Shown here: in pieces, positions 24,390 through 55,520 of the stretch | How positions within the stretch are numbered: position 1 is the stretch's first letter | Layout of the letters: each line of letters begins with the position of its first letter | Source of the DNA: Anthoceros angustus | Lineage: Eukaryota > Plantae > Anthocerotophyta | Direction of reading: 5' to 3' | Assembly: GCA_010909165.1 (NCBI GenBank) | Contig: VJWM01000117.1 | Span: forward strand, 744,001 to 808,000 | DNA length: 64,000 nucleotides | The notes under the pieces: model-generated | Databases searched by the model: none | What the model was told of the DNA's origin: nothing | Seen by the model: only the letters and a program-made list of their open reading frames with translations | Translations under genes and position numbers: made by a program

Positions 24390-27261
24390 TCAGGGTCGTC
24401 CCTTACAACTGCAAGAACCAGCTGCAAAACGATGCACACGGTACCCATCCCTTACAACAATGTCTCTATGTTCAAGCCTTGACATGATCTGCGTGGAACT
24501 ATGGCAGTCACTGCACATGCGTAGATTCTTTGTTACCACCAGAGGTGTCCCACTCGGAGTGTTCAAGAGACCAAACGCCAGAGCTAGCTTCTCAGCATGC
24601 CCACAGAGCGCATCTTCCTTTTCCTCCTCACACACTGACTTCAACACCAACTTTGTGTCAGGTACGTGGCCTCCTTCCTGCTTCAGACGTGTATTCGTGC
24701 TCTCTACCTTAAGCGCAATATCCCCTCTTTTTTCCCCCACTAGAAACCTATGTACCTCCTTATTCACCTCAATAGTCGCCACTGCAGGTTTCTTGATAGC
24801 CCTTGCTACCCTTCTCTGTGTCTCAATCCTATTTACATCGGTCCACCGACCTGCATCCGCATAGGCATTGGCCATGAGCACATAGGCGGGGCCCTCCTGG
24901 GGGTCCAGCGACACGATGCTTTCAAAACACCAAATCGCCCTTTCTATATCCCCGTGACTTTTGCAGGCATTCAACAAACACGTCAAGCCCACAACATTAC
25001 TTTGGCCCTCACATGATAAGAGCATCCTCTCTGCCTCATCTAAATGGCCAGCACGCCCAAGAAGATCAATCATGCAGGTATAATGCTCAATAGTAGGATT
25101 GATGCCGTGCTGTTCAGCCATGGAATTAAAATGCTGGCGACCCTCCTGGACCAGCCCCTCGTGACTGCATGCTACTAAAAGGCAAGTAAAAGTAGCATCA
25201 TTAGGCTGAATGCCGGCAACTAACATCTCGTCAAAACAAGCTAGTGCTTCGTGACCTTCATCACAAGTACCATACCCAGATATGAGGGCGGTCCATGTCA
25301 CCACATCTTTCGTGGCCAAGCTGTCAAAAACCTGGCGGGCATCTTCCAGTTCACCACATTTTGCGTACATGTCCACTAAGCAGTTGCCAACCACTACGTC
25401 ATCCAGCAGTCCCCTTTCCATAATCTGTGAGTGCAGCTGCCTGCCCTTCTGTAAGGCTCCAGTGCTTCCACAGGCCTTCAGAAGGCAAGCAAATGTAACA
25501 TGATCAGCCAAAATGAGACCCGCCTCCTCCATTTGTCCATACACAACAAGCGCCTCTTGGCCGAGTCCTTGCTGTGCATACCCAGCAATCAGGGCGGTCC
25601 ATGTCACCACATCCTTTGTGGCCAAGCTTTCAAAAACCTGGCGTGCACATTCTAGTTCACCACATTTTGCATACATGTCCACCAGGCAGGTGCCGACCAG
25701 TACGTTATCCAGCAGTCCTCTTTCCACAATCTGCGAGTGCAGCTGCCTGCCCTTCCGTAAGCCACCAGTGCTCGCACAGGCCTTCAGAAGGCAAGAAAAG
25801 GTAACATCATTAGCCAAAAGCAGGCCCTCCTGCTCCATCTGTCCATACACAACAAGGGCCTCATGTCCGAACCCTTGCTGTGCATACCCAGCAATCAGGG
25901 CATTCCATGTCACCACATCCTTTGTGGCCATGCTGTCAAAACCTGGCGTGCATCTTCCAGTTCACCACATTTTGCATACATGTCCACCAGGCAGTTGCCA
26001 ACAAACAAGTTAGCAGGAATGCCACTGTGCAACACATCACAGTGCACTTTTCTGCCAGATTCCAAGTCGGCGGCAATGCACAAGCTTGAAGGCAGCTACA
26101 AAGACGTGAGCATCCGCCTTCACTCCTGACCTACGCATCTCATGGTACAGTTGTATGGCCTCATTAGGTTTCCCATGCTTAGCGTACGGAGATTATGGAA
26201 AACCACATGAAGGCATCTGGTTGCCACCTGGTGAACACATCCATGGCCTCCTCTAGCCTACCTCCACATGCATACATGCGCAAGATATGGTTCCCCAAGT
26301 ATGCATCCGACTCGAACCCAAGTTTGACACTGAGATCATGAACTCGTCGCCCCACAACCAAATCCTTCTTAGCTGTACACAGTTTTAGCACACTGTAAAA
26401 CAGAGACGGAGAAATAGCAGAGTCTATCTGCGCCAGAGATTCCAGAGCTCTAACGGCGTCAGAAAGCTTCCCCTGCTGACATAGCATGCTCACCGTTCCA
26501 GCAGTTACGACGCCCATTTCCGATCCTGCATGCCTGCCAGGTTCAGGCTTAGCCGGAGAGCTCGACTTGGAAGGAAAGGGACCATGACCCATCTGCATAT
26601 CCAAGGAAACGAGCTGCTCATCAACCCAAGCTGGCTTAAACATGTTTAACCACAGGACCTCGCCGGACCCCTTACGCCGGAAGTCAGGCGAACGGGAGCT
26701 CTTCTTATCTCGTCTGTTGTCCCACCACATGGTAGGCTCCAGAAAAATTGTTGCCACAAGTGCTCCTGCTCCTGCTCCTGCTTCTGGCAACGACCATCGC
26801 CAGAAAACCCGTCCCCACCCAAACATTTTCTCGGAAGTGGAAGTGCTGGGCTCCTTACAATGCTGCACCTGGGCTCTGTTTGCCAGGGATTCACTCCCAA
26901 AGTGAGGTGAGGAGGGGCTGCTGGTAGAATTCCTGTACATACACCAATTTGCTGTGTCCAGAAAGATTCTGGTTGCCATACTGTGGCCATCGTTCAGGGA
27001 CCGCTGTCGGACGATGAGGCTCACAACGACCATGGCAGGATGCCCAGGTGCTGTGTGTGACCACACCGTACGGGCTGCCTCCGATGAGCCCAAACCCCTA
27101 CGCATGAACATGAATGCAAGCAAGAATCTATTACATGTCTGAACATATGTAGAGCATTCTATGCAGTCCACTAAAGGCTGCGTCTCGATCTCCCAAGCGA
27201 TAAATGCTTCGCGGGTCTGGAATCCGCATGCCCAGGCCAGGGTCACACCTCTTCTCTTCAC
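24390..27261 (-). CDS. PDF(OSB)-motif + PLS-PPR + E1/E2 + DYW:KP GRP-type protein (candidate U-to-C RNA editing factor); this copy has several 1-3 bp frameshifts at 25.9-26.8 kb, so it is a pseudogene or carries consensus errors
   Basis: C-terminus KKPAVATIEVNKEVHRFLVGEK...LCGHAEKLALAFGLLNTPSGTPLVVTKNLRMCSDCH...VVRDGYRVHRFAAGSCSCKGRP* (KPAxA, HxE, CxxC, GRP end). N-terminal WWDNRRDKKSSRSPDFRRKGSGEVLWL at ~26611-26762. The frameshifts are absent in the duplicate at 27.7-29.4 kb. Confidence 0.88.
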
Positions 27262-34186: not shown

Positions 34187-34429
34187 AATCAGATACGAAG
34201 AGAACTAATATAAAGCTGAACATAAGCATCCATCTTTGTGCAATAAGGAGAACATATGCATTCTGAGGCAATGAACTTTCTACTTACATACCTTTCTTCG
34301 TGTCGGCTCTTGTGTGTGTACCAAAGAGACTTTGAAGTTGGTTACACATACATAGACATGCTGAGAGATAGACACACAACTTCGTGGTTCAGCGCCTTGG
34401 CCATAAGCAGTACATACTGAGTGGAGCTC

Positions 34430-34850
34430 CCTATGCCCTTACTCAACTGCCTAGGTACTTAAGTCCTTTCCGTATGCTTTTACAAAGATCTTGGAATCAA
34501 GTATCTCCTATGGCTTTCCTAATGTCTTCGAATCACAAACCAAATGTCGAACATGGCTTTGCTCAAGTGGACTCCCTCTGCCTTTACTCAAGTCTTGGAA
34601 TCAAACATTGATTTTCAGAGAACATGGTTTTCCTGCACATGTCTTTGAAGTACTCAAGTCTAAGTAGATTTGAGGACATGTGGCTTTGGAGTACGAGAAG
34701 ACAAGGGGACGAGGGAGGCGGGATCGGTGGGTTTCCAAAGACAAGAATGAGCATTTGTTTGGGGATGGGTTGCTCAAATCTTCGAATCAAATTGGTATGA
34801 GTTTTCGGAAACATGGCTTTGCAGTGGCCCTGTGCACTACTAGGTATGCC
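34430..34850. repeat. Diverged direct repeat, colinear with 36190-36530 (upstream regions of the two protease copies)
   Basis: Shared ordered motifs CTTTACTCAAGTCTT..AATCAAA, CATGTCTTTG(A/G)AGTAC and AAACATG(G/T)CTTTGCAGT(G/A)GCCC. Confidence 0.65.
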
Positions 34851-35033
34851 ATAGCCTCCTCCTCGTGATACGAAGCGAGACCCAAAGCGTGTAAAATTCA
34901 ATCAATCACTGTAGAGTAATTTCAGATCTTTAAAGATATCATCGGCAGCTTTTGCCAAGTGAGGCGTGCGAAGAGATGGAAGATGCTCTCAATTGCTATG
35001 AAGAGATCAAAGGATCGGATTCATACAAAATTT

Positions 35034-35611
35034 TCAAGGAAGAGAAGCAAATCCGGGCGGCCAGTAGTACATTCCACACAGCCCCGCGGTGTTGCTTGGA
35101 TATCGCAGCATGCACATGAATCCGAGCTCTCCCCACCAGGTGCCCCACGAGTTCTTGAGAACCCAGAAATTTTCCTCGCTGCTGGCGTTGGTGCCGTATC
35201 CGACCACCAGCATGGCGTGATCGACTGTGGTCCCGCACGGGCCGGTGAACACTCCTCCTGCGTAGTGCTGGCGGTGTCGATCTTGCTTGCCGACATCGCC
35301 TTGAACTCGGGGTTTGTCATGTCCGAAAATTGGTTCAGTCCCAAGTCGTATGCGGCTTCTCGATTCCGAGAGTGAATGTAGAAGAAGTTGTCGATGAAGA
35401 TAGAAAACCGACACTTCCTTTCTTCATGGCTTTGATACACACGTCCGTGTTGCATCGCCCACTTATCGAACAACGCTTCAAGTGATTCTGCAGACTTGAC
35501 ATCGTCTCCGGTATATCCATGAAGAGCCTTATCAGCAACCACCTTGGCCACAGCAACGCCCAACAACGCTACTGTCAACATCATAAGCAAGGAAAGCATC
35601 GCAGCTGCCAT
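35034..35611 (-). pseudogene. Papain-like (C1A) cysteine protease with an internal deletion removing the catalytic Cys region
   Basis: Signal peptide and I29 prodomain (EERKCRFSIFIDN, GLNQFSDMT) join with a frameshift and no splice sites to QHYAGGVFTGPCGTTVDHAMLVVGYG...FWVLKNSWG. No QGxCGSCW motif. Confidence 0.85.
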
Positions 35612-38058
35612 ACAAAGAAAGCTAATAGAAATCTGAACTCAAGGATGTCTCTTTGTGCAATGAGGAGAATGCATTCGACGGCCTACGCCTCATAGTGGCC
35701 ACCTCCACCAAGTAAGAGAAAGAGGCTTGATAAGAAAGTAAAAAGGTCTTCAAGCCAGACCAGTGGTTTTTGTCTGGCTCTACCGAAGTCTTGGGCTCCT
35801 GGTTGGAAAAGCTGGCGGCGTCCTTCTTGCCTATAGTAAAGGATGGCTTCCTTGTGTTTTATTTTTTCGTCTGTCTTTAGGAGCTACACAAGCTGTGTGT
35901 AACTTGGGTACACAAGGACATGCTGAGATGAGAACTGCGTGGTTCATCAAACTTGGGCCCAAATCAGTACATGATGAGATTCGGAGCGAGATCATACTGT
36001 GCTCCTTTGGGGATCCGGTTGCTGATATTGTGTTCCCTTGGGGGAACGGATTGTTGTTACTGTGACCCCTACCGTTCCGTTCCGTTCTCGATATTGCTAT
36101 CGTTCTTCAGGAAAGCTCCACTCTACATACATATCTTTCACAGTTCAGATCGCTTTACTCAAGTCTTCGAATCAGATGCTATGCAGTACCCTAGGCCATT
36201 TCGCAATTGTCCAGGTACTCAAGTCGATTCCGTGTGCCCTTTACTCAAGTCTTAAAATCAAATATTTTCTATGCCTATCCCTCATTTTTATATATTTTTA
36301 AACTTGGCTTTGCGGTTATCAATTGGACTTCATGTGCCTTTACTCAAGTCTTCCAATCAAATATTAACTTAAAAAAAAATTGGTGTTCCAGCAAAGGCAT
36401 GTCTTTGGAGTACCTACTCAAGTTAAGTTGATTTCAAGGGAGCATATGGCTTTGCAATATTCATAAGTCTTTGAATCAAATGGGTAGATAAGTACGTTTC
36501 AAAAACATGTCTTTGCAGTAGCCCCACTAGGCTCCTAGTGGGATATTGCATCACATTTTGGGTATCACTCAACATTTTTGCACATCTGGGGCAAAACCTG
36601 TCTGTCACAGTTATGAATGATACATGATAATGATCAGCTCATTCTAATATTCTTGAATTTTGTATCAATAAATAACTTATTCTTTAGTCACCTGAGTTGA
36701 AAGAAATCTTAGGGTACAAGTTACCTTGGCCATGTTCTAGACCTTGTTTAAAGTATTATAAATTGCAATTAGGGATCTGTGGAAGAAGATCAAAAGATGA
36801 GGTAATATAAATAAAAGATGTACATAATTTTTAAGATATGAGGTAAACGTGAGATAAAAGACTCGTTTTGAGTGAATTCAACAATATGGGGTTAATTGCG
36901 TGTGCTTGCTAAGCACATGGGTTCGTCCCCAATACTTCGGATTTCAAACATTCATTCATTCAAATGATGAATCTCTTTGGGAGTGCCCGCTGAGTTCTAG
37001 GAGTGTGCCTCCTAAGCACATAGCTTCGCCTACGGGAGTTCAAATTTCTTAGGCTGCATTTACTGTTGATGTATCTATACCGTGGTTAATGGAATTTCTT
37101 TCCTCAAAAGTGAAGTTTTATCTCAAAAGAAGTCTTCAAATGAAACAAGTGTTAATTTTTAGGAAGTACATAAGCCTTAACAATAGTGTTTTATGGCATG
37201 CGTTAAATATTCTTAATTAACTCTAGAAGCTCCATAGTTGGAAAACAAAAATATTCTTAATTAACTCTAGGAGCTCCATCGTTGGGAATGAAACTCGTTC
37301 GCGCTAGTTAATTACCCCCGTGGAATGTTACAAAGTTCTTTAAGAAACTTGAAACCAATATTTAAAATAGACTCAAATAATAATTATATATGAATTTTTA
37401 ATCTCATACAAGGCATGTTTGGACGTCAAGTTCCAATCCCGAATACATGAGGTAACTTTTAACTTCGCTTCCTGCTGCCTATGAATGTAGTGAATACAAA
37501 ATGACCAAGCCAACATCAAGTCGACTACATTTGTTGACAATGTACATTTCACAGCTTACAATGAAAGAAAAGTTGTAAGAAGATGTTTGAACTGTGAACT
37601 GCATTTGGTCTCTATATGGCTCACATTTTGCCTATTATTTATAATAATATCAGACTCCATCACGATCCTAGAAACATGTGCGGTATCTCCTGGATAGAAT
37701 TCCCAACTGCTTTTAACATAATCTGCCTAAAAGAGATAGGTTCTTGCTTTGATTTTTTAGCTTTGAGTTTTATAACATCTTTGAATTTCTGGCCTCAAAC
37801 TTTACAATAAGTAGACCATAGTGGAGGAAGGTATGGAATCTTTTCTACTGATAATTTTCATAAAGGTTAACCAAATAAATGAGTTCAATTATTTTTATGT
37901 TTTATGTTTTATATTTATAAAGCTCATAAATATCCTAAATTATCTTTCTTTTATTTTGCTCCAACTTCCAACCTGTGTGGTTTAATGAATCCATTCATTG
38001 TCTGATTGATTCCACATTTAGGTATTTGGCATCCGACGATCAAAGATAGGTGATCCCA

Positions 38059-38844
38059 TCAACTGTTGTGTGGAATGTGTGTAATCTCGTAGGGGTCGCC
38101 GTAGACCTTCCAGTGAAGCGGCAGGTTGAGATCAAAGTTCTTTTCGCGGAGGAAAACGAGCTGCTCGGTATCGACGCGGCTGGTATCCTGGTGAGCGGCC
38201 TCCTTACGCATCTCCTTCTTGCGCTCGTCCAGAAACACGCTCAACCAGACGGTCTCGTCGCCGCGGGCAGAGGGCGGATGCGCTCTTTTGAGCGCGCGAG
38301 CCCGGATGGCCTCCATTCCGTCGGCTCCATGCATCACGGCCGCGTCGTAGTACGCGAACTGCCCCAGCGGACGGAGCCCGTCCCGCTCTCCTTGCGCGAC
38401 CGAGGGATTGAAGTACATGCTGTCGCGCATGTCGTCCTGCGCCTTCTGGAACACGGGGTCCTTGGCCGCCGTCCGCCAGTCGCGCGGGAAGAAGGGGTCC
38501 AGGCCCTTGTGGGAAGGGCTCCCTTCCGCGGCCAGCTTCCGCAAAGCCGGCAGGTACCTGGCCAGCACGTTGCCCTCAGGTTTCCGATTCGCGTAGAGCT
38601 CCACCACCTGCACCATGTCCCCTGTGCCCGAGCAGAACCCTACGATCCCCGCCGTGTAGCCTCTCCCATCCCCGATGTCCTCGATGTACGCGTACTGAGC
38701 TCTCCAGTTCAGCGACGAGTTCTCCGCGCTCGACACCAGCTCCTGCGCGATCTCCTTCAGTTTCGGGTCGGCCAGCGATGGCCCGCCGGCCCCGCAAGTG
38801 CGTAGCGCTACTAAGAGCAGCAACAATGCGCCCCTGAACTCCAT
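38059..38844 (-). CDS. csn: Secreted GH46 chitosanase, intronless, 261 aa, actinobacterial-like
   Basis: Signal peptide MEFRGALLLLLVALRTCGAG, then KEIAQELVSSAENSSLNWRAQYAYIEDIGDGRGYTAGIVGFCSGTGDM...LGQFAYYDAAVMHG...FLDERK...AAHQDTSRVDTEQLVFL...WKVYGDPY. Colinear with Streptomyces N174-type chitosanases; catalytic Glu (SAENS), Asp (GDGRG) and Thr (GYT) present. Confidence 0.93.
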   Translation of the reverse strand: MEFRGALLLLLVALRTCGAGGPSLADPKLKEIAQELVSSAENSSLNWRAQYAYIEDIGDGRGYTAGIVGFCSGTGDMVQVVELYANRKPEGNVLARYLPALRKLAAEGSPSHKGLDPFFPRDWRTAAKDPVFQKAQDDMRDSMYFNPSVAQGERDGLRPLGQFAYYDAAVMHGADGMEAIRARALKRAHPPSARGDETVWLSVFLDERKKEMRKEAAHQDTSRVDTEQLVFLREKNFDLNLPLHWKVYGDPYEITHIPHNS

Positions 38845-38914
38845 GACTAGTTCCTCCTTGATACACCCTGAAAGCGAGCAGTGATGTCGTTCGAACACAA
38901 TCTGTACTACAAAC

Positions 38915-39545
38915 CTAGGCACGGAGGCAAGCAAAGAGCGAGATTGATCAGTCTTTAAAAAACACCAGTACTACAATCCTAGGCACAGAGGCAAGCAAAG
39001 AGCGATTTGATCACTTTCAAACACTCCAGTACCACAACCCTAGGCACAGAGGCAAGCAAAGATCAGACATGTCAATATGATGACTAGCCTATGCAGGGAG
39101 GCACGCAAGGGCTGATGTCTTTCAGACACAGAAGCAAGCAAAGACTAATGTCTGCCGGACACGCGCATTACTTCTAAACCCTATGCAGAGCTCGAGGCAA
39201 GCGGAGACTGACATCTTTCAGACACGTTTACTACTTCTAAAGCCTGTGCAGAGAGGCAAGCAGAGATCGATGCCTTTCAGACGCTTCTTCCAAAATCCTT
39301 ATGCAGCGAGGCAAACAGAGACTGATGTCTTTCAGACACATCATTACTACAGTGCTATCAGCTACTTAGCCTAAGCAGAGAGGCAAGCAGAGTCTGATGT
39401 CTTTCCGACACATCACTACCGTAGTGCCATCTGCAGCTACCTAGCCTATGCAGAGAAGCTGATGTCCTTCAGACACATCACTACTACTGTGGCATCGCTA
39501 CTTAGCCTATGCAGAGAGGCAAGCAAAGGGTGATGTCTTTCAAGC
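38915..39545. repeat. Degenerate tandem array (~10 units of ~50-75 bp) immediately upstream of the chitosanase
   Basis: Recurrent core AGAGGCAAGCA(A/G)AGA...TGATGTCTTTCAGACAC and CCTAGGCACAGAGGCAAGCAAAG. Confidence 0.85.
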
Positions 39546-39689
39546 ATATCAGGTCACTTAACCCTAATATGAGAGACGCATGCACACAGCAGGAACGTTG
39601 TTGAACTGCCTCGGATCCGACAACAGCGGTGCAGACTGCCTCTCCAATGCTGTCGAGGCTGGGACGGAAACGCTTCTTGTCTGGATCCT

Positions 39690-40030
39690 AATGAAGAAGT
39701 CAGCACCCGGACCGTCACCTACCTGGACCTCTGGACAGCTACTGGCGGCACTTGCAAGGATCCCAGATTTCAGGATTACAGGGAAATTGTTGAAGTGCTC
39801 CACAAGAATTGGCGGTGAGCATGAGCTCTCGCCGAGGACTTCTTCGGAGGCCGATCGATTTCTGCACCTGGTCAAGCTGAACTTATAACTGCTTCACTGT
39901 CACAGCTGGAAGAAAAGCATCCTCGATTTCAAGGATTCCAGAGATGTTCAGAGATTCCAAGGATCCATGAGCTTGATTTAGAGTGAATCTTGCTGCCAGA
40001 CGAAAGCCTGCCGCTGGAACTTGCTGTTGG
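39690..40030 (+). pseudogene. Possible decayed leucine-rich-repeat (NLR-like) fragment
   Basis: Frameshifted pieces TYLDL(S), ARIPDFR, LHLVKLNL..C and ELDL resemble LxxLxLxxC repeats; weak. Confidence 0.3.
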
Positions 40031-40525
40031 CCGCTTGATCACATCGTCCACAGTCGGCGCAATTACGTCCCCAGATAGGTGACTTCGCCTCGGGTTGTCG
40101 CTCACCAGGTCATAAAGATCATCACATCGGTAGGTCCGAAAGCCGCCAGGAACATGGATTTACGCTTCCTACTCGCATCTCCTTCACAAACCTTGACAAG
40201 AATTGGTCGGTAAATCCATGTCCATCTCTAGCATGAGAGATGCCGATGAACCGCTTGCAATTTTGCATGACAAACATCAATTCTACTCTACTAGACGAAC
40301 ACGTATAATCCTCATAACTGCGCAGGAGGTGAAGAACAATGCTGCTTGTTATGGCCGAAAGGAGCTGACAAAGCAAGATTCCAAGCAAGAAGATTGGACT
40401 TGCAGCATGCTACAAACACGTCAAGTCCAGACAACGGAACGATCCACGGAAATAGTCAGTTCGACTCCATCCCTTCAGCATTTACAGTCCTCTTCCATGC
40501 ATACATTACTCGTCAAGACCCCTTG

Positions 40526-43500
40526 CCATACATCGCTCGTCGATACAAATTTAACCCCTGAATGCCGAATGGGTTTTTGGCCTATTTTCGCCCACATCAC
40601 GATTCCTAATTTTCATTATTTCATGGCGCTGCAAAAATTCAGTCCCTTCACATGGCAAATACGAGTTTACTGCCCTTTATGCGGTGGTGTGTGGAAGAAA
40701 ACTACTCCACTACTTTCTTTCCTTACCAAATTTTGGAAGCCATGGCCATGCCATGATCATAGGCACGTCAAAAACTTCACCACTTCGCTATAATCGACTC
40801 TAGTTTTTCTTATTTGCTATGATAGAGAAGTAATAGATAGTTGCAAATTAAATTTTTTTACTATACAAGGAGTAATAAAATTTTTATTAACCCTCCATCA
40901 AGAAATGTTTTTCTTCTAATTTATTCAATTTTCCAAGAATATAAAATAAGTTTTCACATTACCCCTCACACTTTTGGTTTTTGATGGATGTTTGAGCTAC
41001 ATGAGCAAGACCCTCTATCACCATTGGGCTCATTATCTTGCACTTGGAGTTGAGTATGTTTGCTCATGCTTATGAACATTATATTTATGCATTTGTTGTT
41101 GAACATATTGCTCATGTTCAAGCACATTATACTTATACATTCGTGTTGAACATATTGCTCATGTTCATGAACATTACACTCATGCATAAATTTGTTGTTA
41201 AACATGCTGCTCATGCTCATGCACATTACACTGTTGTTGAACATATTGCTCATTTGATATAGTATGTACATTTGATAGAATTTGAGCTATATACGCAAGT
41301 TTCTCTTTTATTATTTGGCTCATGATCTTGCGTTAAAGTTGATACTCATCACACCTATGCATTTGTTGTGAAACATAATTAAGCGCATTTAATTTCTTGA
41401 TAGAAAAGAAGAAAGTTTTTATGTACAAGACCTTAGTGGAGTAGTAATATTATTCTTATTATTATAATTACATTATTAATAAAATAATAAAGAAGTATCG
41501 ATTGCAAACCAAGGTTCTTTTACTATAGAAAATGCTTTATAATAATAAAATCTACTTTTTATAATAAAACTTTGAAAATTATGTAGCTAAGAGATAATAA
41601 TGTAGTATTAATTAATTAATATAAAATAATAAAGAAGTGATAAATCAAGTTAATCTATAAAATAATTAAACTTTATACAAGAAGAAAAAATAATGTAGGA
41701 AACTCCATCAAGTTTAGGTCCTAGCCCTTTGCACCTTGGAAGCTCTCGTGTTAAGTGCCTACGACCTACTTCTTGCTCTAGTGTAACTGTTTTTTGAAAA
41801 TAGAGTCTTTCAAACTATGATGCAAAGCAGGTAAAATCAAATTTCCTAGTATTAGGAAATCTGTCCTCATCAAGCCGCAAATTCTTGCGAGGCATGGTGC
41901 AGCAATTTCATAACCGGCAAGATTAATTCATCAAGAAACATCTATATGAAAGCATGGTTTGGTGGTACACTTCTGTACCATATGGCTGTGGTACACTTGG
42001 TTACTTTTGAGAGATGAGAGAGAGATGTGAGAGAATGATGTGAGAGAGTCCAAGTTTCACTAAATTAATATTTTACGTTTTATATTTAACTATATTTTAT
42101 TTCATTAGTCGATTTTTATCTTACTTTTAACTTATCTTTTTTAACTCGCTTTGAGGTCAACGACCGCCACCTCCGCCTCACCACCTCCGCCTCCTCCTCC
42201 CGCCTCCACTGCTACATGTGCCTACGAACTTCGACGGCTGGTCATCTTGACCTCATCGCCGGTCTTGCCCTCTGCTGGTCTTGCCCTCTGCTGTTGCTAG
42301 TCTCGCCTTTTGCCGCCCGGCCGGTCCTCCGCCTCGCTGCCACGTCCCGCCGTTGCTGCTGGTCTCGCCTTTTGCTGCTGCTGGTCTTGCCCTCTGCTGG
42401 TCACGCCTCTGCTGCTGGTCTCGCTGCCGCCGGTCCCGCCTGCTGCTGGTCACGCCTCTGCTGCTGCTGGTCTCGCCTCTTCCGCCGCTCGCTTTCTGCT
42501 CCTCGCTATCACTGGGTCCCGCCTGGCTCTACCGCTCTGGTCCTACCTTTGTCGCCTCGCCTTTGCTCATCTTTAAGATGAATCTTTAATGAAGATGAGA
42601 ATTAAATGCAAGATAACTCAAGAACAAGATCATTTGATCCTCGCTTTAATACCATGTATCATTTGCTAACACATAATACACACCTAAGCTCCCATACATC
42701 GCTCGTCGATACAAATTTAACCCTGAATGCCGAATGGGTTTTGGCCTATTTTCGCCCACATCACGATTCCTAATTTTCATTATTTCATGGCGCTGCAAAA
42801 ATTCAGTCCCTTCACATGGCAAATACGAGTTTACTGCCCTTTATGCGGTGGTGTGTGGAAGAAAACTACTCCACTACTTTCTTTCCTTACCAAATTTTGG
42901 AAGCCATGGCCATGCCATGATCATAGGCACGTCAAAAACTTCACCACTTACTGGCTATAACTGACCTCTAGTTTTTCTTATTTGCTATGATAGAGAAGTA
43001 ATAGATAGTTGCAAATTAAATTTTTTTACTATACAAGGAGTAATAAAATTTTTATTAACCCTCCATCAAGAAATGTTTTTCTTCTAATTTATTCAATTTT
43101 CCAAGAATATAAAATAAGTTTTCACATTACCCCTCACACTTTTGGTTTTTGATGGATGTTTGAGCTACATGAGCAAGACCTCTATCACCATTGGGCTCAT
43201 TATCTTGCACTTGAGTTGAGTATGTTTGCTCATGCTTATGAACATTATATTTATGCATTTGTTGTTGAACATATTGCTCATGTTCAAGCACATTATACTT
43301 ATACATTCGTGTTGAACATATTGCTCATGTTCATGAACATTACACTCATGCATAAATTTGTTGTTAAACATGCTGCTCATGCTCATGCACATTACACTGT
43401 TGTTGAACATATTGCTCATTTGATATAGTATGTACATTTTGATAGGAATTTGAGCTATATACGCAAGTTTCTCTTTTATTATTTGGCTCATGATCTTGCC

Positions 43501-44878
43501 GTTAAAGTTGATACTCATCACACCTATGCATTTGTTGTGAAACATAATTAAGCGCATTTAATTTCTTGATAGAAAAGAAGAAAGTTTTTATGTACAAGAC
43601 CTTAGTGGAGTAGTAATATTATTCTTATTATTATAATTACATTATTAATAAAAATAATAAAGAAGTGACTGACGATTGCAAACCAAGGTTCTTTTACTAT
43701 AGAAAATGCTTTATAATAATAAAAATCTACTTTTTATAATAAAACTTTGAAAATTATGTAGCTAAGAGATAATAATGTAGTATTAATTAATTAATATAAA
43801 AATAATAAAGAAGTGATAAATCAAGTTAATCTATAAAATAATTAAACTTTATACAGTAAGAAAAAAATAATGTAGGAAACTCCATCAAGTTTAGGTCCTA
43901 GCCCTTTGCACCTTGGAAGCTCTCGTGTTAAGTGCCTACGACCTACTTCTTGCTCTAGTGTAACTGTTTTTTGAAAATAGAGTCTTTCAAACTATGATGC
44001 AAAGCAGGTAAAATCAAATTTCCTAGTATTAGGAAATCTGTCTCATCAAGCCGCAAATTCTTGCGAGGCATGAAAAGCAATTTCATAACCGGCAAGATTA
44101 ATTCATCAAGAAACATCTATATGAAAGCATGGTTTGGTGGTACACTTCTGTACCATATGGCTGTGGTACACTTGGTTACTTTTGAGAGATGAGAGAGAGA
44201 TGTGAGAGAATGATGTGAGAGAGTCCAAGTTTCACTAAATTAATATTTTACGTTTTATATTTAACTATATTTTTATTTTACTGTAGTCGATTTTTTATCT
44301 TACTTTTAACTTATCTTTTTTTAACCTGTTTTGAGGTCAACGACCGCTTACCTCCGGCCTCACCACCTCCGCTTCCTCCTCCCGCCTCCACCTGCTTACA
44401 TGTGCCTACGCGAACTTCGGCTTCTGCTGCTGGTCATCTTGACCTCTACTGCTGGTCTTGCCCTTTGCTGCTGCTGCTGGTCTTGCCCTCTGCTAGTCCG
44501 CCTTTTGCTGCTGCTGCTGCTGGTCCCGCCCCGTCTCGGTCATTGCCTGTGTCCTTTGCGCCGCTGCCCCGCCTCGCCATCGCTGGTCCCGCTTTACCGC
44601 CGCTGGTCCCGCCTGCTGCTGGTCACGCCCTCTGCTGCTGGTCTCCGCAGCCCTCGCCGTTGCCGCTGGTCTCGCCTCTTCCGCCGCATCGCTTCTCGCA
44701 CGCCGGGTCCGCCCGCTTCACTGGTCCTACCTTTGTCGCCTCGCCCGCTCATCTTTAAGATGAATCTTTAATGAAGATGAGAATTAAATGCAAGATAACT
44801 CAAGAACAAGATCATTTGATCCTGCTTTAATACCATGTATCATTTGCTAACACATAATACACACCTAAGCTCCCATAC
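40526..44878. repeat. Head-to-tail 2.17-kb duplication of a mostly AT-rich, probably TE-derived segment
   Basis: 40526-42691 is approximately 42692-44878; the junction falls at CCATAC. Internal TGTTGAACATATTGCTCATG repeats and a GC-rich CTG/CGC low-complexity tract. Confidence 0.9.
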
Positions 44879-47800
44879 TAGAAGATGAGAATATATATAG
44901 CACAAAGAGGAGAACATTTATAACTTCATAAGTCACAAACGGTTATAACTACCTAACCTAAGTAGCCTAACCCTAGGATACTAAGAAATGTATAATAACC
45001 GTGTGAGTTACTTTTAACAATTAATAAAATATGTCCATCGAACAAAAATTATGAAGGGACAGCAATGGACACTTGAGTTCATCGCAATTAACTCCAACTC
45101 CAAGATCCCAACTACTTTAGACCCTAATTGCCTAGGTAGTTTCTTGAGGAGTCATTTTGTTCTTGAGGGTCTTCTGTCAGGCTTTCAGGAGATTGGGCTC
45201 ACAAGTCAGTGCCATGCTTTAGATGGCCGCGGGAAGCCCTTCAATTTTGTCCGGCCGAGTCGTTTTGTTGTACTTGGCTAAAACTGGAAGCTCATTTCCA
45301 AGATCCTCAACTTGAATGGGAAACAATTCAAAGGGTCTTTTTCCACATGGCTAGTGGCAGCCCCATTTTTAAATGGGTGGGTGTTCCGAAGAATGTGCAT
45401 GAGCTGTGCATGTTCTATAACTGCCGCTTGATTGATGAATTGTTGATGTGGAATAGTTTGGGCATTTGTTCAAGTACAGCAGGAACAAGACCATCGATTC
45501 CTACATGTTAGAGCGTGATGGAGCAGAAACCAAATGACTTCTTGGAGTTTTGGGGAAGCGGTTGGAAGGTCGAGAGTAGTACATATTATCGATCATGGCT
45601 ACAATATTGCAAATACAACCATCTGGCCTTGGGTCGTCTATTTGGAAAACTTGTATCAGGCATCAGAAAAGCTACAGTTAGAAGCTTTAAAAATGAGCTA
45701 CCGTGGAAAGCAAGGTGTGAGGCACACTGTGGCCCCCTTCCGTAAAGAGGGAGGGTCAAAGTTTGCTAAGGGGTAAGGGACAGTCCTCTCGTTAGAGGAG
45801 TGAAAGTTTGCGATACATATGTATTAAATTTAGATAGATCAATTTACATAAATCAATTTACATCAATCAATTTTCGTATAGCTGAGGTCTTAATATGAAG
45901 AAGAAGCTACAAGAATACAACAAAGAGGACCTGAGTAAGAAGCCAATCTTGCCTCAGAGTCCTTCCGGCAGACATAAGTTGATCAAATCTTAGCACATCA
46001 TAGATAAAAAATTAGATGGTAAATGCCTCAAATTTGTCAAGAAAACCTTACGCCATGGTCGTTTTTAACTTATCTTTTAACTCGCTTTGAGGTCAACGCA
46101 CCGCTACCGCCTCACCACCTCCGCCTCCTCCCGCCTCCACTGCTATACGTGCCTACGAACTTCGCTTCCGCCGGCCGGTCATCTCGACTTACCGGTCTTG
46201 CCCTCTTTGTCTTGCTCTTGCGCTTAGTCTCGCCTGGCTGGCCGGTCCTCCCGCTTGCCATATCGCTGGTCCCGCCTGCTACATGTGTCCCGCCTCGTGC
46301 CGCTGGCTGTCCGCCCGCCTATCGCCGTCCCCGCTTTACCGCCGCTGGTCTCGTCACTGGGCTGGTCTCGCCTGCGCTGGTCTCGGCAGTTCTTCCCGTT
46401 GCTGGCTGGTCTCGCCTCTTCATACCGCCACGCTTGTCTCATCACCGGGTCTCGCCTTTACCGCTGGTCCTATCCGCCTCGCTTTGTCGCTTTTCATCTT
46501 TAAGATGAATCTTTAATGAAGATGAGAATTAAATGCAAGATAACTCAAGAACAAGATCATTTGATCCTCGCTTAATACCATGTATCATTTGCTAACACAT
46601 AATACACACCTAAGCTCCCATACTAGAAGATGAGAATATATATAGCACAAAGAGGAGAACATTTATAACTTCATAAGTCACAAACGGTTATAACTACCTA
46701 ACCTAAGTAGCCTAACCCTAGGATACTAAGAAATGTATAATAACCAGGTGAGTTACTTTTAACAATTGGGGCTGAAATACGATGTCCACTGAACAAAAAT
46801 TATGAAGGGACAGCAATGGACACTTGAGTTCATCGCAATTAACTCCAACTCCAAGATCCCAACTACTTTAGACCCTAATTGCCTAGGTAGTTTCTTGAGG
46901 AGTCATTTTGTTCTTGAGGGTCTTCTGTCAGGCTTTCAGGAGATTGGGCTCACAAGTCAGTGCCATGCTTTAGATGGCCGAGGGAAGCCCTTCAGCTTGT
47001 CTGGGTCGTTTTGTTGTACTTGGCTAAAAAACTGGGAAGCTCATTTCCCAAGATCCTCAACTTGAATGGGAAACAATTCAGTGGGTCTTTTTCCACATGG
47101 CTAGTGGCAGCCCCATTTTTAAATGGGTGGGTGTTCCGAAGAATGTGCATGAGCTGTGCATGTTCTATAACTGCCGCTTGATTGATGAATTGTTGATGTG
47201 GAATAGTTTGGGCATTTGTTCATACAGAGAACAAGACCATCGATTCCTACATGTTAGAGCGTGATGGAGCGTAAACCAAATGACTTCTTGGAGTTTTGGG
47301 GAAGCGGTTGGAAGGTCGAGAGTAGTACATATTATCGATCATGGCTACAATATTGCAAATACAACCATCTGGCCTTGGGTCGTCTATTTGGAAAACTTGT
47401 ATCAGGCATCAGAAAAGCTACAGTTAGAAGCTTTAAAAATGAGCTACCGTGGAAAGCAAGGTGTGAGGCACACGTGGCCCCTTCCGTAAAGAGGGAGGGT
47501 CAAAGTTTGCTAAGGGTAAGGGACCCTCCTCTAGAGGAGTGAAAGTTTCATATACATATGTATTAAATTTAGATAGATCAATTTACATAAATCAATTTAC
47601 ATCAATCAATTTTCGTATAGCTGAGGTCTTAATATGAAGAAGAAGCTACAAGAATACAACAAAGAGGACCTGAGTAAGAAGCCAATCTTGCCTCAGAGTC
47701 CTTCCGGCAGACATAAGTTGATCAAATCTTAGCACATCATAGATAAAAAATTAGATGGTAAATGCCTCAAATTTGTCAAGAAAAAACCTTGCTGCCATGG
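44290..47800. repeat. Overlapping ~1.75-kb tandem duplication including decayed retroelement-like coding sequence
   Basis: ~44300-46060 is approximately 46060-47800; both carry MKGQQWTLEFIAINSNSKIP... and ...FWGSGWKVESSTYYRSWLQYC. Confidence 0.85.
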
Positions 47801-53300: not shown

Positions 53301-55049
53301 AGTCTTCAGATGTAGAGTAAGACTTCTCACAGTCCCTTGCATCATGTGGACTGTATTTGGCGGAGGAGGTAATGGGAGTGTCTGGTTCTGCAAGAATGCA
53401 GGGAGGACAATCTTTTTGCTTTTGCCCTATGGAATACCAAGTTTTACATAGTCGTTACTACTACGCCCATCAATACCACCACATATAAATGCCCGTATCA
53501 ATACGTTCTTTGTACTATACGTGTATCATTTACATATATACGATATCGTATTTTTAATGATATATATTCATATTATATTTTATATATAATAAATATGTAT
53601 ATCATACGAGTTACGTATGTATGCTGGTCTGTACATGTTTATTATATGGTACTTTGTATTTACCATTTGTGCAAATCTTGACGCATCTTTATGCCCCAGA
53701 TTTCTAGCACAACTGCCTATTTTTCTCTATCCAGTGCCTCCTAAAAAGGCACATCTTGAATTTCATCGACTGCCTCCTCTTCTGCCTCCATCTTCTCCTC
53801 TGCGTCACCGCCATTACGTGCCCTCCCCACGGCCACGAACTGTCGACTTCCCCTGGCTCTCTTTTAACGCACCTGAATGTTCCCCCCCAAGTCCTCCCTC
53901 CTTCTCTCTCCCCCTAGACAACTGCCTCATGTCCGTTACGCCTTTTGCCCCTCGACCATGGTCATGTTGGTCGCCCACTCCTGTCCTCCCTTTGCCACCC
54001 GCCTCTTCCACTCCCTTGCGTTGTTTTCATTGTCCTCCCTCCTCCTCCTCCTCATACATAATCAAGTAAAAACAAGAGTTTCAGCTGTGTATGTGGAGCT
54101 TAAAAACAAAACCAGATCTAGACACAAGGGTGCATTGAAGAGGGAAGGTAGATTATAAACGCATAGCTATGCAAAGGAGGCAAAATGGAAAGAGAATGAC
54201 AGCCAAAGGGAGAGAGATAGAGTCCCTGGTTACTGTCATGTAGGAAAAGCAAGAGGGGAAGAATAAAATAGTAGTGTGAGAGGGGAGCTCATTGTCACAG
54301 TCATGTTGCAACACAAAGAGGGAAAAATTATAAAATGGGTGTCATACTGAAGCATTAACTAGGAGTGAGAGGTGACAGGAGAGACCAGAAGCAGGTTGTT
54401 AAGATGATGAGAGAAAGTGGAGAAGAAAATCACAAACTTAACACCAAGCCAACTAACTTAATGCGTGTTGCCAATGGAAAGTATTACATGAAATTGTAAC
54501 AAAGGACTATAACATAAGCAGGTTTTCATAGTATATGTTTGAAATCATAAACAATGCTATACTTAGGAGGGTGAGGTGATGAGAGAGAGAGTCAGGTTTG
54601 TGTGAAGATGGTGACAGCATGAGAAGGGAATAGTGTCAAACTTAATACCAAGCCAAGCATGTTGCAATTTGGAAGTGTAACATAAAATTGCAACAACGAC
54701 TGTAACATAGGCTGCCTTTTCTAGTAGGGTATGCCTTGAGCTCTGTCCTTTGGAGTCCGGTGTTTGCTCTCTCTGGGCGCTCTCAGTCATCGAGCCAAGT
54801 GGTGCGCCATGTCGGCATAATAAGTCACACAAGTTTTCTCGCGTGGGTGACGAGAATGGTATTCCATACTCCAACAGCTCATTCCCTGGGACTTATTAAT
54901 CGGATTGCGACTTCATGGAGCCCAATGTTCCAGCTTGCACACAAAGAATACATATTTTATGGCTAGCCTGCTCACTTATGGAAAAAATAAATACACTTCG
55001 CATGGAAAACCCAAACAGTACCTACTTGGGATTCCGTCATTGAGCATGT

Positions 55050-55520
55050 GATCCTCAAACGGGGTGGGTAGCGGAGGGATGTACCATGGCGAAGGTTTGC
55101 AAGTACTCTCCTATGCAGCAGGGGCACGCCTTCATCCCCCTCGCCATCGAGACCCATGGGGCCATGGGCAAGGCTTTTCTAGGTTCCTTAAGACCTATGC
55201 TACGGAGTATCACAACCGCAGGAACAGGGTTGGCCTCCCTCTTTTATGTATCGTGGCTTTCTACAGGCAACGGATATTCATCGCCCGCAACGGGCATTGG
55301 CCAATGCGGTATATAGGACAACGGCGAGCGTAGGGCAAGCGGTTTCTTCGGCACCGATGGTGGGTAGGCCTTTTGCATCCCCAATTTTGATATCCTTATT
55401 GCAATAGGCAGTTACAAGACTAGCGACAATGGGGTTAGTCCCCCATGGTCTGGTGCCCTCATAAGGGGTGTTCCTCTTCTCGTGGGTAGATGGTTTCCCA
55501 TCTCTTTTCATAATAAAGTC
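55050..55520 (+). mobile_element. 3' fragment of a CRE-like RLE LINE
   Basis: KVCKYSPMQQGHAFIPLAIETHGAMG; terminal hairpin AGATGG-TTTC-CCATCT followed by AATAAA. Confidence 0.7.

Follow-up and report, generated by a model that had tools for sequence, protein, structure and literature searches.

A putative GH46 chitosanase gene of actinomycete type in a chromosome of the hornwort Anthoceros angustus

Introduction

Plants degrade chitin with chitinases of families GH18 and GH19, and many fungi evade them by deacetylating their wall chitin to chitosan. The fungal partners of hornworts, the Mucoromycota, have walls rich in chitosan. Apart from the candidate considered here, we know of no land plant that owns a true chitosanase. 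Among the actinobacterial chitosanases of GH46 cluster A, the closest described enzymes are CsnN174 of Streptomyces sp. N174 (PDB 1CHK) and SACTE_5457 (PDB 4ILY). In CsnN174, Glu22 acts as the general acid and Asp40 as the general base, while Arg42 and Thr45 position the water.

Transfers of GH46 genes into eukaryotes have been described for the mycoparasitic oomycete Pythium (PMC7720654), for astigmatic mites (PMC9113151) and for the fungus Lichtheimia (PMC4663542), and GH46 enzymes inhibit fungi with chitosan walls (PMC4663542). Bacterial GH46 has also been put into plants by engineering: as cited in PMC4663542, a Streptomyces enzyme was active in transgenic tobacco, and transgenic rice carrying Cho1 of Bacillus circulans MH-K1 had better resistance to blast. 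For bryophytes, the A. angustus list of horizontally transferred genes includes a GH26 enzyme, a glucuronyl hydrolase and a glyoxalase (PMC7027989), and a bryophyte super-pangenome is reported to contain 1,809 such families (PMC12513842).

Here we analyse 64,000 nucleotides of the A. angustus assembly (contig VJWM01000117.1, positions 744,001 to 808,000; "the window"), in which a sequence-only reading had noticed an intronless frame resembling a Streptomyces chitosanase. We conclude that this is very probably a nuclear plant gene derived by horizontal transfer from an actinomycete GH46 cluster A chitosanase, and that its product would be secreted, would cut chitosan and would serve in antifungal defence or in the control of fungal partners.

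Results

An intact GH46 gene

The gene lies on the minus strand and runs from an ATG at 38844 to a TGA at 38059-38061, 261 codons without interruption or intron (Table 1). A mechanically called ORF starts at an upstream TTG (38934), but neither the homology nor the GC-rich block extends beyond the ATG. A plus-strand ORF at 38050-38805 (251 aa) was considered as a gene and rejected, as GC-rich coding sequences commonly have such an ORF on the antisense strand. Residues 35-243 of the protein match the Pfam profile PF01374 (Glyco_hydro_46) over its whole length (positions 1-210 of 210; E 2.6e-92, 308.7 bits against a curated cut-off of 27 bits). A phmmer search of the PDB gave the Streptomyces chitosanases 4ILY and 1CHK as best matches (E about 1e-93), which align over residues 19-254 without large gaps; identity to the solved Streptomyces enzymes is about 65-70%. 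Both searches confirm the complete, intronless frame, colinear with actinobacterial GH46, that had been described from the sequence. An ESM Atlas look-up returned GH46 and nothing further.

Table 1. Features of the GH46 locus and of the downstream plant neighbour (positions in the window)
Feature	Position	Strand	Basis or remark
Multi-exon papain-like cysteine protease, I29 propeptide and C1 pieces	34200..35611 (start approximate)	-	Pfam PF08246, E 1.9e-15
Probable 3' UTR with AATAAA at 37950-37955	37950..38058	-	sequence; polyadenylation putative
GH46 chitosanase CDS	38059..38844	-	261 codons + TGA; ORF translation, Pfam, PDB matches, AF2 model
C-terminal tail, 7 residues past the bacterial domain end, plant-specific	38062..38082	-	alignment
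Glyco_hydro_46 catalytic domain, residues 35-243	38116..38742	-	holds E41, D59, R61, T64
Catalytic T64	38653-38655	-	= CsnN174 T45
Catalytic D59	38668-38670	-	= CsnN174 D40
Catalytic E41	38722-38724	-	= CsnN174 E22
Signal-peptide-like segment, codons 1-20	38785..38844	-	by inspection; alignment; low pLDDT
AAGGAGG, perfect Shine-Dalgarno-like heptamer	38853..38859	-	8 nt before ATG
Tandem array of 60-72-nt units (about 10), immediately upstream of the gene	38889..39570	-	repeat search

The catalytic Glu, Asp and Thr had been called intact, and so they are: E41, D59 and T64, together with R61 (equivalent to Arg42 of CsnN174), are invariant across our alignment of plant and bacterial GH46 proteins. 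Further equivalences, with the hornwort residue given before that of CsnN174, are D76=D57, W47=W28, W123=W101, D167=D145, R208=R190, E215=E197, R223=R205 and W245=W227. The substrate-binding residues D57, E197 and R205 of CsnN174 are thus all kept, as are the structural Trp residues and the Arg/Asp network. The sole change among the key residues is that of D201 to Q219, at a site that holds Ser in 4ILY and is therefore variable in bacteria too. Homology with CsnN174-type enzymes predicts that the mature protein is an inverting endo-chitosanase (EC 3.2.1.132). The sequon N42-S-S adjoins the catalytic Glu and might receive a glycan along a eukaryotic secretory route; like the change at D201, it speaks against the predicted function.

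An AF2 model built on a shallow alignment of nine sequences (pLDDT 77.9, pTM 0.80; pLDDT below 50 at residues 1-19) has a predicted lysozyme-like, two-lobed and mostly helical fold, which Foldseek matched to 4ILY, 1CHK and 4OLT with TM scores of 0.79-0.89.

Plant genes on the chromosome and contigs across the junctions

Gene density in the window is high. Several of its genes encode PPR proteins of the PLS class with E, E+ and DYW motifs; others encode an mTERF protein, a protein kinase, polyubiquitin and a papain-like protease. The PPR gene at 24390-25931 has a KPAxA-type box and a GRP end, which mark the DYW:KP variant, not known outside hornworts, lycophytes and ferns; together with the gene density, this points to a hornwort. 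The papain-like protease, in whose ORF pieces C1 motifs can be seen, is the nearest recognisable plant neighbour downstream. In a word search, the relatives obtained for the mTERF protein (from a liverwort and from Pistacia) were only 28-29% identical. On the upstream side, a Pfam search of the ORFs at 39.9-44.8 kb gave nothing significant. No bacterial neighbour genes were found around the ORF in the window, and an Rfam scan of the whole window had no match. The window also holds a tandem duplication of 2.17 kb, found by the repeat search and unrelated to the gene.

The public run X1 (organism A, probably DNA) covers 36800-40300 at about 99-100% identity, with a depth of 14-17 across the flanks and the coding sequence. 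Its contigs bridge both junctions, one leading from the AT-rich flank into the coding sequence (37692-38255) and another from the coding sequence into the upstream region (38229 to past 40300). At a few sites, among them a CA repeat at 38076 in which 2 bases are deleted, X1 departs from the window, so it does not simply repeat the assembly, although the same species or sample may still be its source. Pieces of a second copy, more divergent (about 83-88% identity) and apparently shortened, are present in X1 as well. The gene is integrated in the plant nuclear chromosome and is not a contaminant: its embedding there, as first proposed, is borne out by the flanking plant genes and by contigs of even depth across both junctions.

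Plant-side relatives under selection

Among 5.8 billion proteins searched, the closest match was P0001, a protein of 262 aa from the Logan assembly of SRR33208241, which is 86% identical over the full length. The 2.5-kb contig that encodes it, L001, can be aligned with positions 39077 to 38031 of the window. This span takes in the coding sequence (about 90% nucleotide identity), about 28 nt past the stop codon and an upstream 61-nt tandem repeat, present in about eight units in L001. Organisms B and D have copies of the coding sequence at about 93% nucleotide identity, along with a conserved segment at 39.8-40.3 kb. Orthologues, which the sequence-only reading had suggested looking for in other hornworts or bryophytes, are thus present in L001 and in organisms B and D. 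The database searched takes in NCBI and UniRef, and the best 120 of its 5,833 hits contained no other plant protein.

Different methods put dS between the window and L001 at 0.22-0.36 and dN/dS at 0.18-0.35, and 40 of the 79 differences fall at third positions. These values, the copies themselves and the repeat that they have in common point to vertical inheritance in related plants under purifying selection.

Termini of the protein

The first 20 or so residues resemble a short hydrophobic signal peptide. By inspection, there is one Arg in the n-region, a 10-residue core of Leu, Val and Ala, and small residues before the mature start; inspection revealed no twin-arginine motif in this segment, which agrees with the earlier description and is compatible with a eukaryotic host. 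The segment is conserved in P0001 and cannot be aligned with the longer bacterial signals; homology to the bacterial proteins starts at about residue 21. At the other end, the few extra residues noted from the sequence form a tail of 6-7 residues that varies between relatives: it differs in L001, and its frame is shifted in X1 by the 2-base deletion in the CA repeat. For both reasons the tail looks unconstrained. Alignment with bacterial GH46 shows plant-specific insertions of 1 and 2 residues, and neither the hornwort protein nor P0001 has the 4-residue insert typical of the Streptomyces/Kribbella type.

Flanking sequence and base composition

Directly upstream of the gene is a tandem array whose units each carry a CTTTGCTTGCCTCTGTGCCTAGG-like box, most of them also with the palindrome TGTCTGAAAGACA. 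The array occurs only at this spot within the window. The same repeat stands upstream of the homologue in L001, and in organism D the array is replaced by 26 nt. The repeat search found no inverted repeats and no flanking direct repeats or target-site duplications around the gene.

The heptamer AAGGAGG just before the start codon could be a relic of the ribosome-binding site of the donor, in which case the start codon and signal peptide used by the plant would likewise come from the donor. We give this possibility little weight. There are 21 copies of the heptamer in the window, counting both strands; the chance of one falling at this spot is about 1e-3, a figure judged post hoc. Moreover, the heptamer is not conserved, having been lost from L001 through a 14-nt deletion. 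Beyond the stop codon, about the first 28 nt are conserved in L001, the contigs of organisms B and D reach to about 37967 and some tens of bases further, and an AATAAA 104-109 nt past the stop is a putative polyadenylation signal.

The coding sequence has 63% GC, against 33% in the downstream flank (37-38 kb) and 49% in the upstream flank (39-40 kb). The gene had been described as a GC-rich ORF between very AT-rich DNA; its GC-richness stands, and only the downstream flank deserves the second part of that description. GC at third codon positions (GC3) is 0.82 in the hornwort gene and 0.81 in L001, as compared with a mean of 0.96 (range 0.89-0.99) in 79 bacterial homologues and 0.49-0.71 in eight neighbouring plant genes. 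The base composition has shifted part-way from the bacterial to the host value, that is, it has been partially ameliorated. This shift, the low dN/dS and the existence of relatives with the same upstream repeat all favour the domesticated bacterial gene that had been proposed.

Actinomycete origin

Beyond P0001, no hit exceeds 72% identity. Of the best 120 of 5,833, those named to organism are all from Actinomycetota, the rest being unnamed metagenome or Logan proteins. A scan of 185,579 bacterial and archaeal species, each represented by a single genome, gave 599 relatives, of which the best 80 all belong to Actinomycetota, headed by Planosporangium thailandense at 70%. Three trees were built: a quick one of 129 rows including distant representatives, a careful one of 56 rows, and a named tree of 97 rows. 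In all of them the plant pair, with support of 100/100 and a long stem of 0.38-0.59 changes per site, is nested in actinobacterial GH46, as was anticipated for a gene transferred from this phylum.

In the second tree, the plant pair falls in an 18-row clade supported at 96/94 (the nested clades have 96/94 and 96/95), whose named members are all Actinomycetota. It contains Planosporangium, Actinoplanes, Micromonospora, Krasilnikovia, Kitasatospora and soil-metagenome proteins, while the Streptomyces CsnA group forms a separate clade at 99/95. The third tree places the pair in a 29-row clade (SH-aLRT 95) of 19 Micromonosporaceae, 2 Streptomyces and 8 unnamed sequences. One unnamed tree neighbour belongs to a cluster of proteins from Cryptosporangiaceae MAGs. 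The phylogenetic evidence is that the gene descends from an actinomycete GH46 cluster A chitosanase, and our best guess at the donor is that it was Micromonosporales-like. An attempt to exclude a Streptomyces donor failed, since an AU test does not reject a tree with the plant pair in the main Streptomyces clade (difference in lnL 3.6, p 0.456). For this reason we identify the donor no more closely than as an actinomycete that had a cluster A enzyme. The label "Streptomyces-like" is too narrow, as the best trees favour Micromonosporaceae, Cryptosporangiaceae and soil metagenomes and the 4-residue insert is missing, although a Streptomyces affinity is compatible with the AU test.

Expression

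In the run X4 (organism B, guessed to be RNA), a contig of 936 nt spans 37967-38887 at a depth of 40, with adjacent contigs at 9.6 and 14.5, a pattern which suggests a transcript rather than DNA. The ends of this contig (about 37967 and 38887) were rejected as proof of transcript ends, as its 5' end lies where the tandem repeat begins, a place at which an assembly of DNA would break too. A contig of the run X19 (organism D, also guessed to be RNA) continues into the upstream region, and the one RNA-like run of organism A, taken as the window's own organism, yielded no contig at the locus. Transcription of the GH46 gene is therefore no more than suggested and is the weakest part of the case.

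Discussion

An intact gene that stands among plant genes, is common to related plants and is kept by selection indicates a real transfer from bacterium to plant. The transfer would have been into an ancestor common to several related plants, most likely hornworts. We envisage that the hydrophobic N-terminus of about 20 residues routes the protein into the secretory pathway and that the enzyme, in the apoplast or in mucilage, cuts partially deacetylated chitin (chitosan) by an inverting endo-mechanism of the CsnN174 type. Such cutting would damage the walls of fungi that are rich in chitosan or that deacetylate their chitin, and the chito-oligomers set free would be perceptible to plants. In sum, the enzyme would serve either to defend against fungi or to keep fungal partners in check. 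Export is implied by the signal-like N-terminus, and the only plausible extracellular substrates are partially deacetylated fungal chitin and possibly material from arthropods or associated with oomycetes. With these two points, and with the known inhibition of chitosan-walled fungi by GH46 enzymes, the proposed role seems a reasonable one.

Other histories of the gene have to be weighed against this. An actinomycete ORF wrongly joined to plant DNA, whether by bacterial contamination or by chimeric assembly, might be suspected from a GC content and GC3 that differ markedly from those of the flanks and from a protein 66-72% identical to enzymes of soil actinomycetes. However, the contigs of X1, which may be the source sample, bridge both junctions at the depth of the flanks; homologues elsewhere are accompanied by the same upstream repeat, which is non-coding; bacterial sequences reach at most 72% identity among the best 120 of 5,833 hits, against 86-93% for the plant-side copies; GC3 lies below that of every one of the 79 bacterial homologues; and bacterial neighbour genes are absent. 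We therefore consider such an artefact hardly credible. Equally hard to credit is vertical descent of an ancient streptophyte gene that most plants have lost, or an arrival through a fungal or viral intermediate. GH46 is known in chloroviruses, in some early-diverging fungi and in mycoparasitic Pythium (PMC4663542, PMC7720654), but the plant pair sits inside actinobacterial cluster A and not with the viral cluster C or with fungal sequences, no other plant protein is among the best 120 of 5,833 hits, and GC3 is still far above the level of the host.

If the transfer is accepted, the gene could still be a neutral relic, intact by chance and unexpressed or unused. The lack of a contig at the locus in the RNA-like run of organism A would fit this, as would the unconstrained C-terminal tail with its frameshifting 2-base indel in X1, and the more divergent and apparently shortened second copy in that run. 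A relic is nevertheless improbable in view of a reading frame that is open in both the window and L001 despite a dS of about 0.22-0.36, a dN/dS of 0.18-0.35, the retention of all catalytic and most binding residues, and the CDS-sized contigs in guessed-RNA runs of two organisms, that of organism B being deeper than the flank contigs. It is also unlikely, in our estimation, that the target of the enzyme changed after transfer, from fungal walls to the wall glycans of bacteria or cyanobacteria or to chitin-derived signals of symbionts. Here one may point to the lysozyme-like fold of GH46, several doubtful members of which have putative peptidoglycan-binding modules (PMC4663542), to the long stem branch leading to the plant pair (0.38-0.59 changes per site), and to the plant-specific insertions of 1 and 2 residues and the D201Q change. 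Against this, the residues with which CsnN174 binds GlcN (D57, E197, R205, W28/W101/W227 and the D145/R190 network) are unchanged, and overall identity to proven chitosanases is 65-70%. A transferred chitosanase acting on fungal chitosan thus remains our preferred reading.

Our search of full-text literature on chitosanase or GH46 in connection with hornworts, bryophytes or land plants found no report of a land-plant GH46. Neither GH46 nor chitosanase is named in the examined text and supplements of the A. angustus HGT study (PMC7027989), or in those parts of the Anthoceros agrestis/punctatus paper that were consulted. The "glycosyl hydrolase" gene AANG004297 of the A. angustus study was rejected as a prior report, since it is a GH26. 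The gene may already be listed in an HGT catalogue. It is possible, although we advance it tentatively, that this is the first natural GH46 of a land plant, captured by hornworts, possibly together with the donor's ribosome-binding site, start codon and signal peptide, and now a secreted effector directed toward Mucoromycota or chitin-deacetylating pathogens.

The hornwort chitosanase provides a concrete hypothesis, namely that it limits, permits or signals fungal colonisation, and a transformable hornwort would allow this to be tested. As a case of a bacterial gene becoming a plant gene it is clean and well bounded, with part amelioration of GC3, a possible Shine-Dalgarno relic, a short signal peptide, a free-running tail and a lineage-specific repeat. 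Bacterium-to-bryophyte transfers are now counted in hundreds, so that this one, a transfer of a carbohydrate-active enzyme (CAZyme) in a well-known family, is an interesting addition and not a new principle.

Comparison with known systems

The hornwort enzyme is like CsnN174 and SACTE_5457 of cluster A in mature sequence, in catalytic and binding residues and in modelled fold. It differs from them in lying in a plant chromosome, in having an N-terminus of 20 residues where the bacterial enzymes have Sec or Tat signals of 30-40, and in a GC3 of 0.82 as opposed to about 0.96. In addition, the hornwort protein has no 4-residue insert, has insertions of one and two residues, has Gln in place of D201 and ends in the tail of 6-7 residues. 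The GH46 proteins of Micromonosporaceae (Planosporangium, Actinoplanes, Micromonospora), of Cryptosporangiaceae MAGs and of soil metagenomes are the nearest, at 66-72% identity: three trees place them in one clade with the plant pair, and at the 4-residue site they agree with it in indel state. Whereas many of these bacterial enzymes add a CBM32 (discoidin), CBM2 or ricin-type lectin domain, the hornwort protein consists of the catalytic module only.

As in Pythium, mites and Lichtheimia, a chitosanase of prokaryote or virus type has become fixed in a eukaryote that deals with fungal walls. However, the Pythium GH46 groups with chlorovirus cluster C, while for the hornwort gene the donor would be an actinobacterium with a cluster A enzyme and the recipient a land plant. 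With published transfers into bryophytes the gene shares the form of an intronless or intron-poor CAZyme gene, a GC content above that of the host, flanking plant genes and, as far as the best 120 of 5,833 hits go, restriction to one lineage. The GH46 tobacco and rice likewise have a bacterial enzyme in a plant, but these are engineered, and the hornwort gene is their natural, evolutionarily fixed counterpart. If the protein is indeed a secreted effector, it would be nature's version of the transgenic chitosanase plants.

Sequences upstream of the chitosanase gene

The short motif preceding the plant start codon may be a remnant of the ribosome-binding site that the gene had in bacteria. The motif is absent from L001, a 2.5-kb Logan contig from run SRR33208241 encoding a plant-side GH46 homologue with 86% protein identity (P0001), where a 14-nt deletion has removed it.

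Beyond this motif lies a tandem array, in which every unit conserves a CTTTGCTTGCCTCTGTGCCTAGG-like box and most units also carry the TGTCTGAAAGACA palindrome. We found no further occurrence of the array within the window; the same array is present 5' of the GH46 homologue in L001, and organism D, a related organism with a GH46 copy, has 26 nt in its place. Possible readings of these repeats are a promoter-proximal minisatellite or a regulatory array.

Further upstream, a segment with approximately 94% conservation in organism D and in organism B, another GH46-carrying relative, is found in the RNA-like runs of both. No protein family is recognisable in this segment, which might represent either a conserved regulatory region or an exon from a neighbouring gene that has not been annotated.

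Features of the window upstream of the chitosanase gene and elsewhere
Feature	Window position	Strand	Description
Perfect AAGGAGG	38853-38859	minus	8 nt 5' of the plant ATG
Tandem array	38889-39570		about 10 units of 60-72 nt, immediately 5' of the chitosanase gene
Conserved segment	39804-40300		upstream of the tandem array
2.17-kb unit	40570-44880		two near-identical tandem copies
CTG/CCG-repetitive ORFs of the 2.17-kb units	42.15-42.6 kb and 44.33-44.78 kb
PLS-PPR editing factor, DYW:KP type	24390-25931	minus	KPAxA-like box, C-terminus GRP

Variant and additional GH46 copies

On its 3' side, the GH46 homologue of L001 is followed by sequence unlike the downstream flank in the window. Positions 1833-2094 of L001 instead match window 55015-55271 weakly (67%), 17 kb away in the window. 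This suggests that the region has been rearranged, that a repeated element is involved, or that L001 comes from a paralogous locus.

In run X1, a public and probably DNA run of organism A, we see a second, divergent GH46 copy, with pieces matching window 38148-38361 and 38698-38777 at approximately 83-88% identity. Its depth equals that of the main copy. Internally it apparently lacks approximately 243 nt, and ahead of the 3' end its sequence departs from that of the main copy; organism A probably carries it as a decayed paralogue at another genomic site. Run X1 also differs from the window at 38076, six codons ahead of the stop, where a CA repeat is 2 bases shorter. With this deletion, the C-terminal tail would be read in another frame and become longer; the difference is either a true polymorphism or an error of assembly in run X1 or in the window data.

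Other features of the window

The 2.17-kb tandem pair looks like a very recent duplication, each unit combining an AT-rich part that contains a 47-nt repeat with a GC-rich ORF; neither unit has a Pfam match. Elsewhere in the window, the DYW:KP type of the PPR editing factor is a sign that the plant belongs to a lineage performing U-to-C RNA editing (hornworts, lycophytes or ferns).
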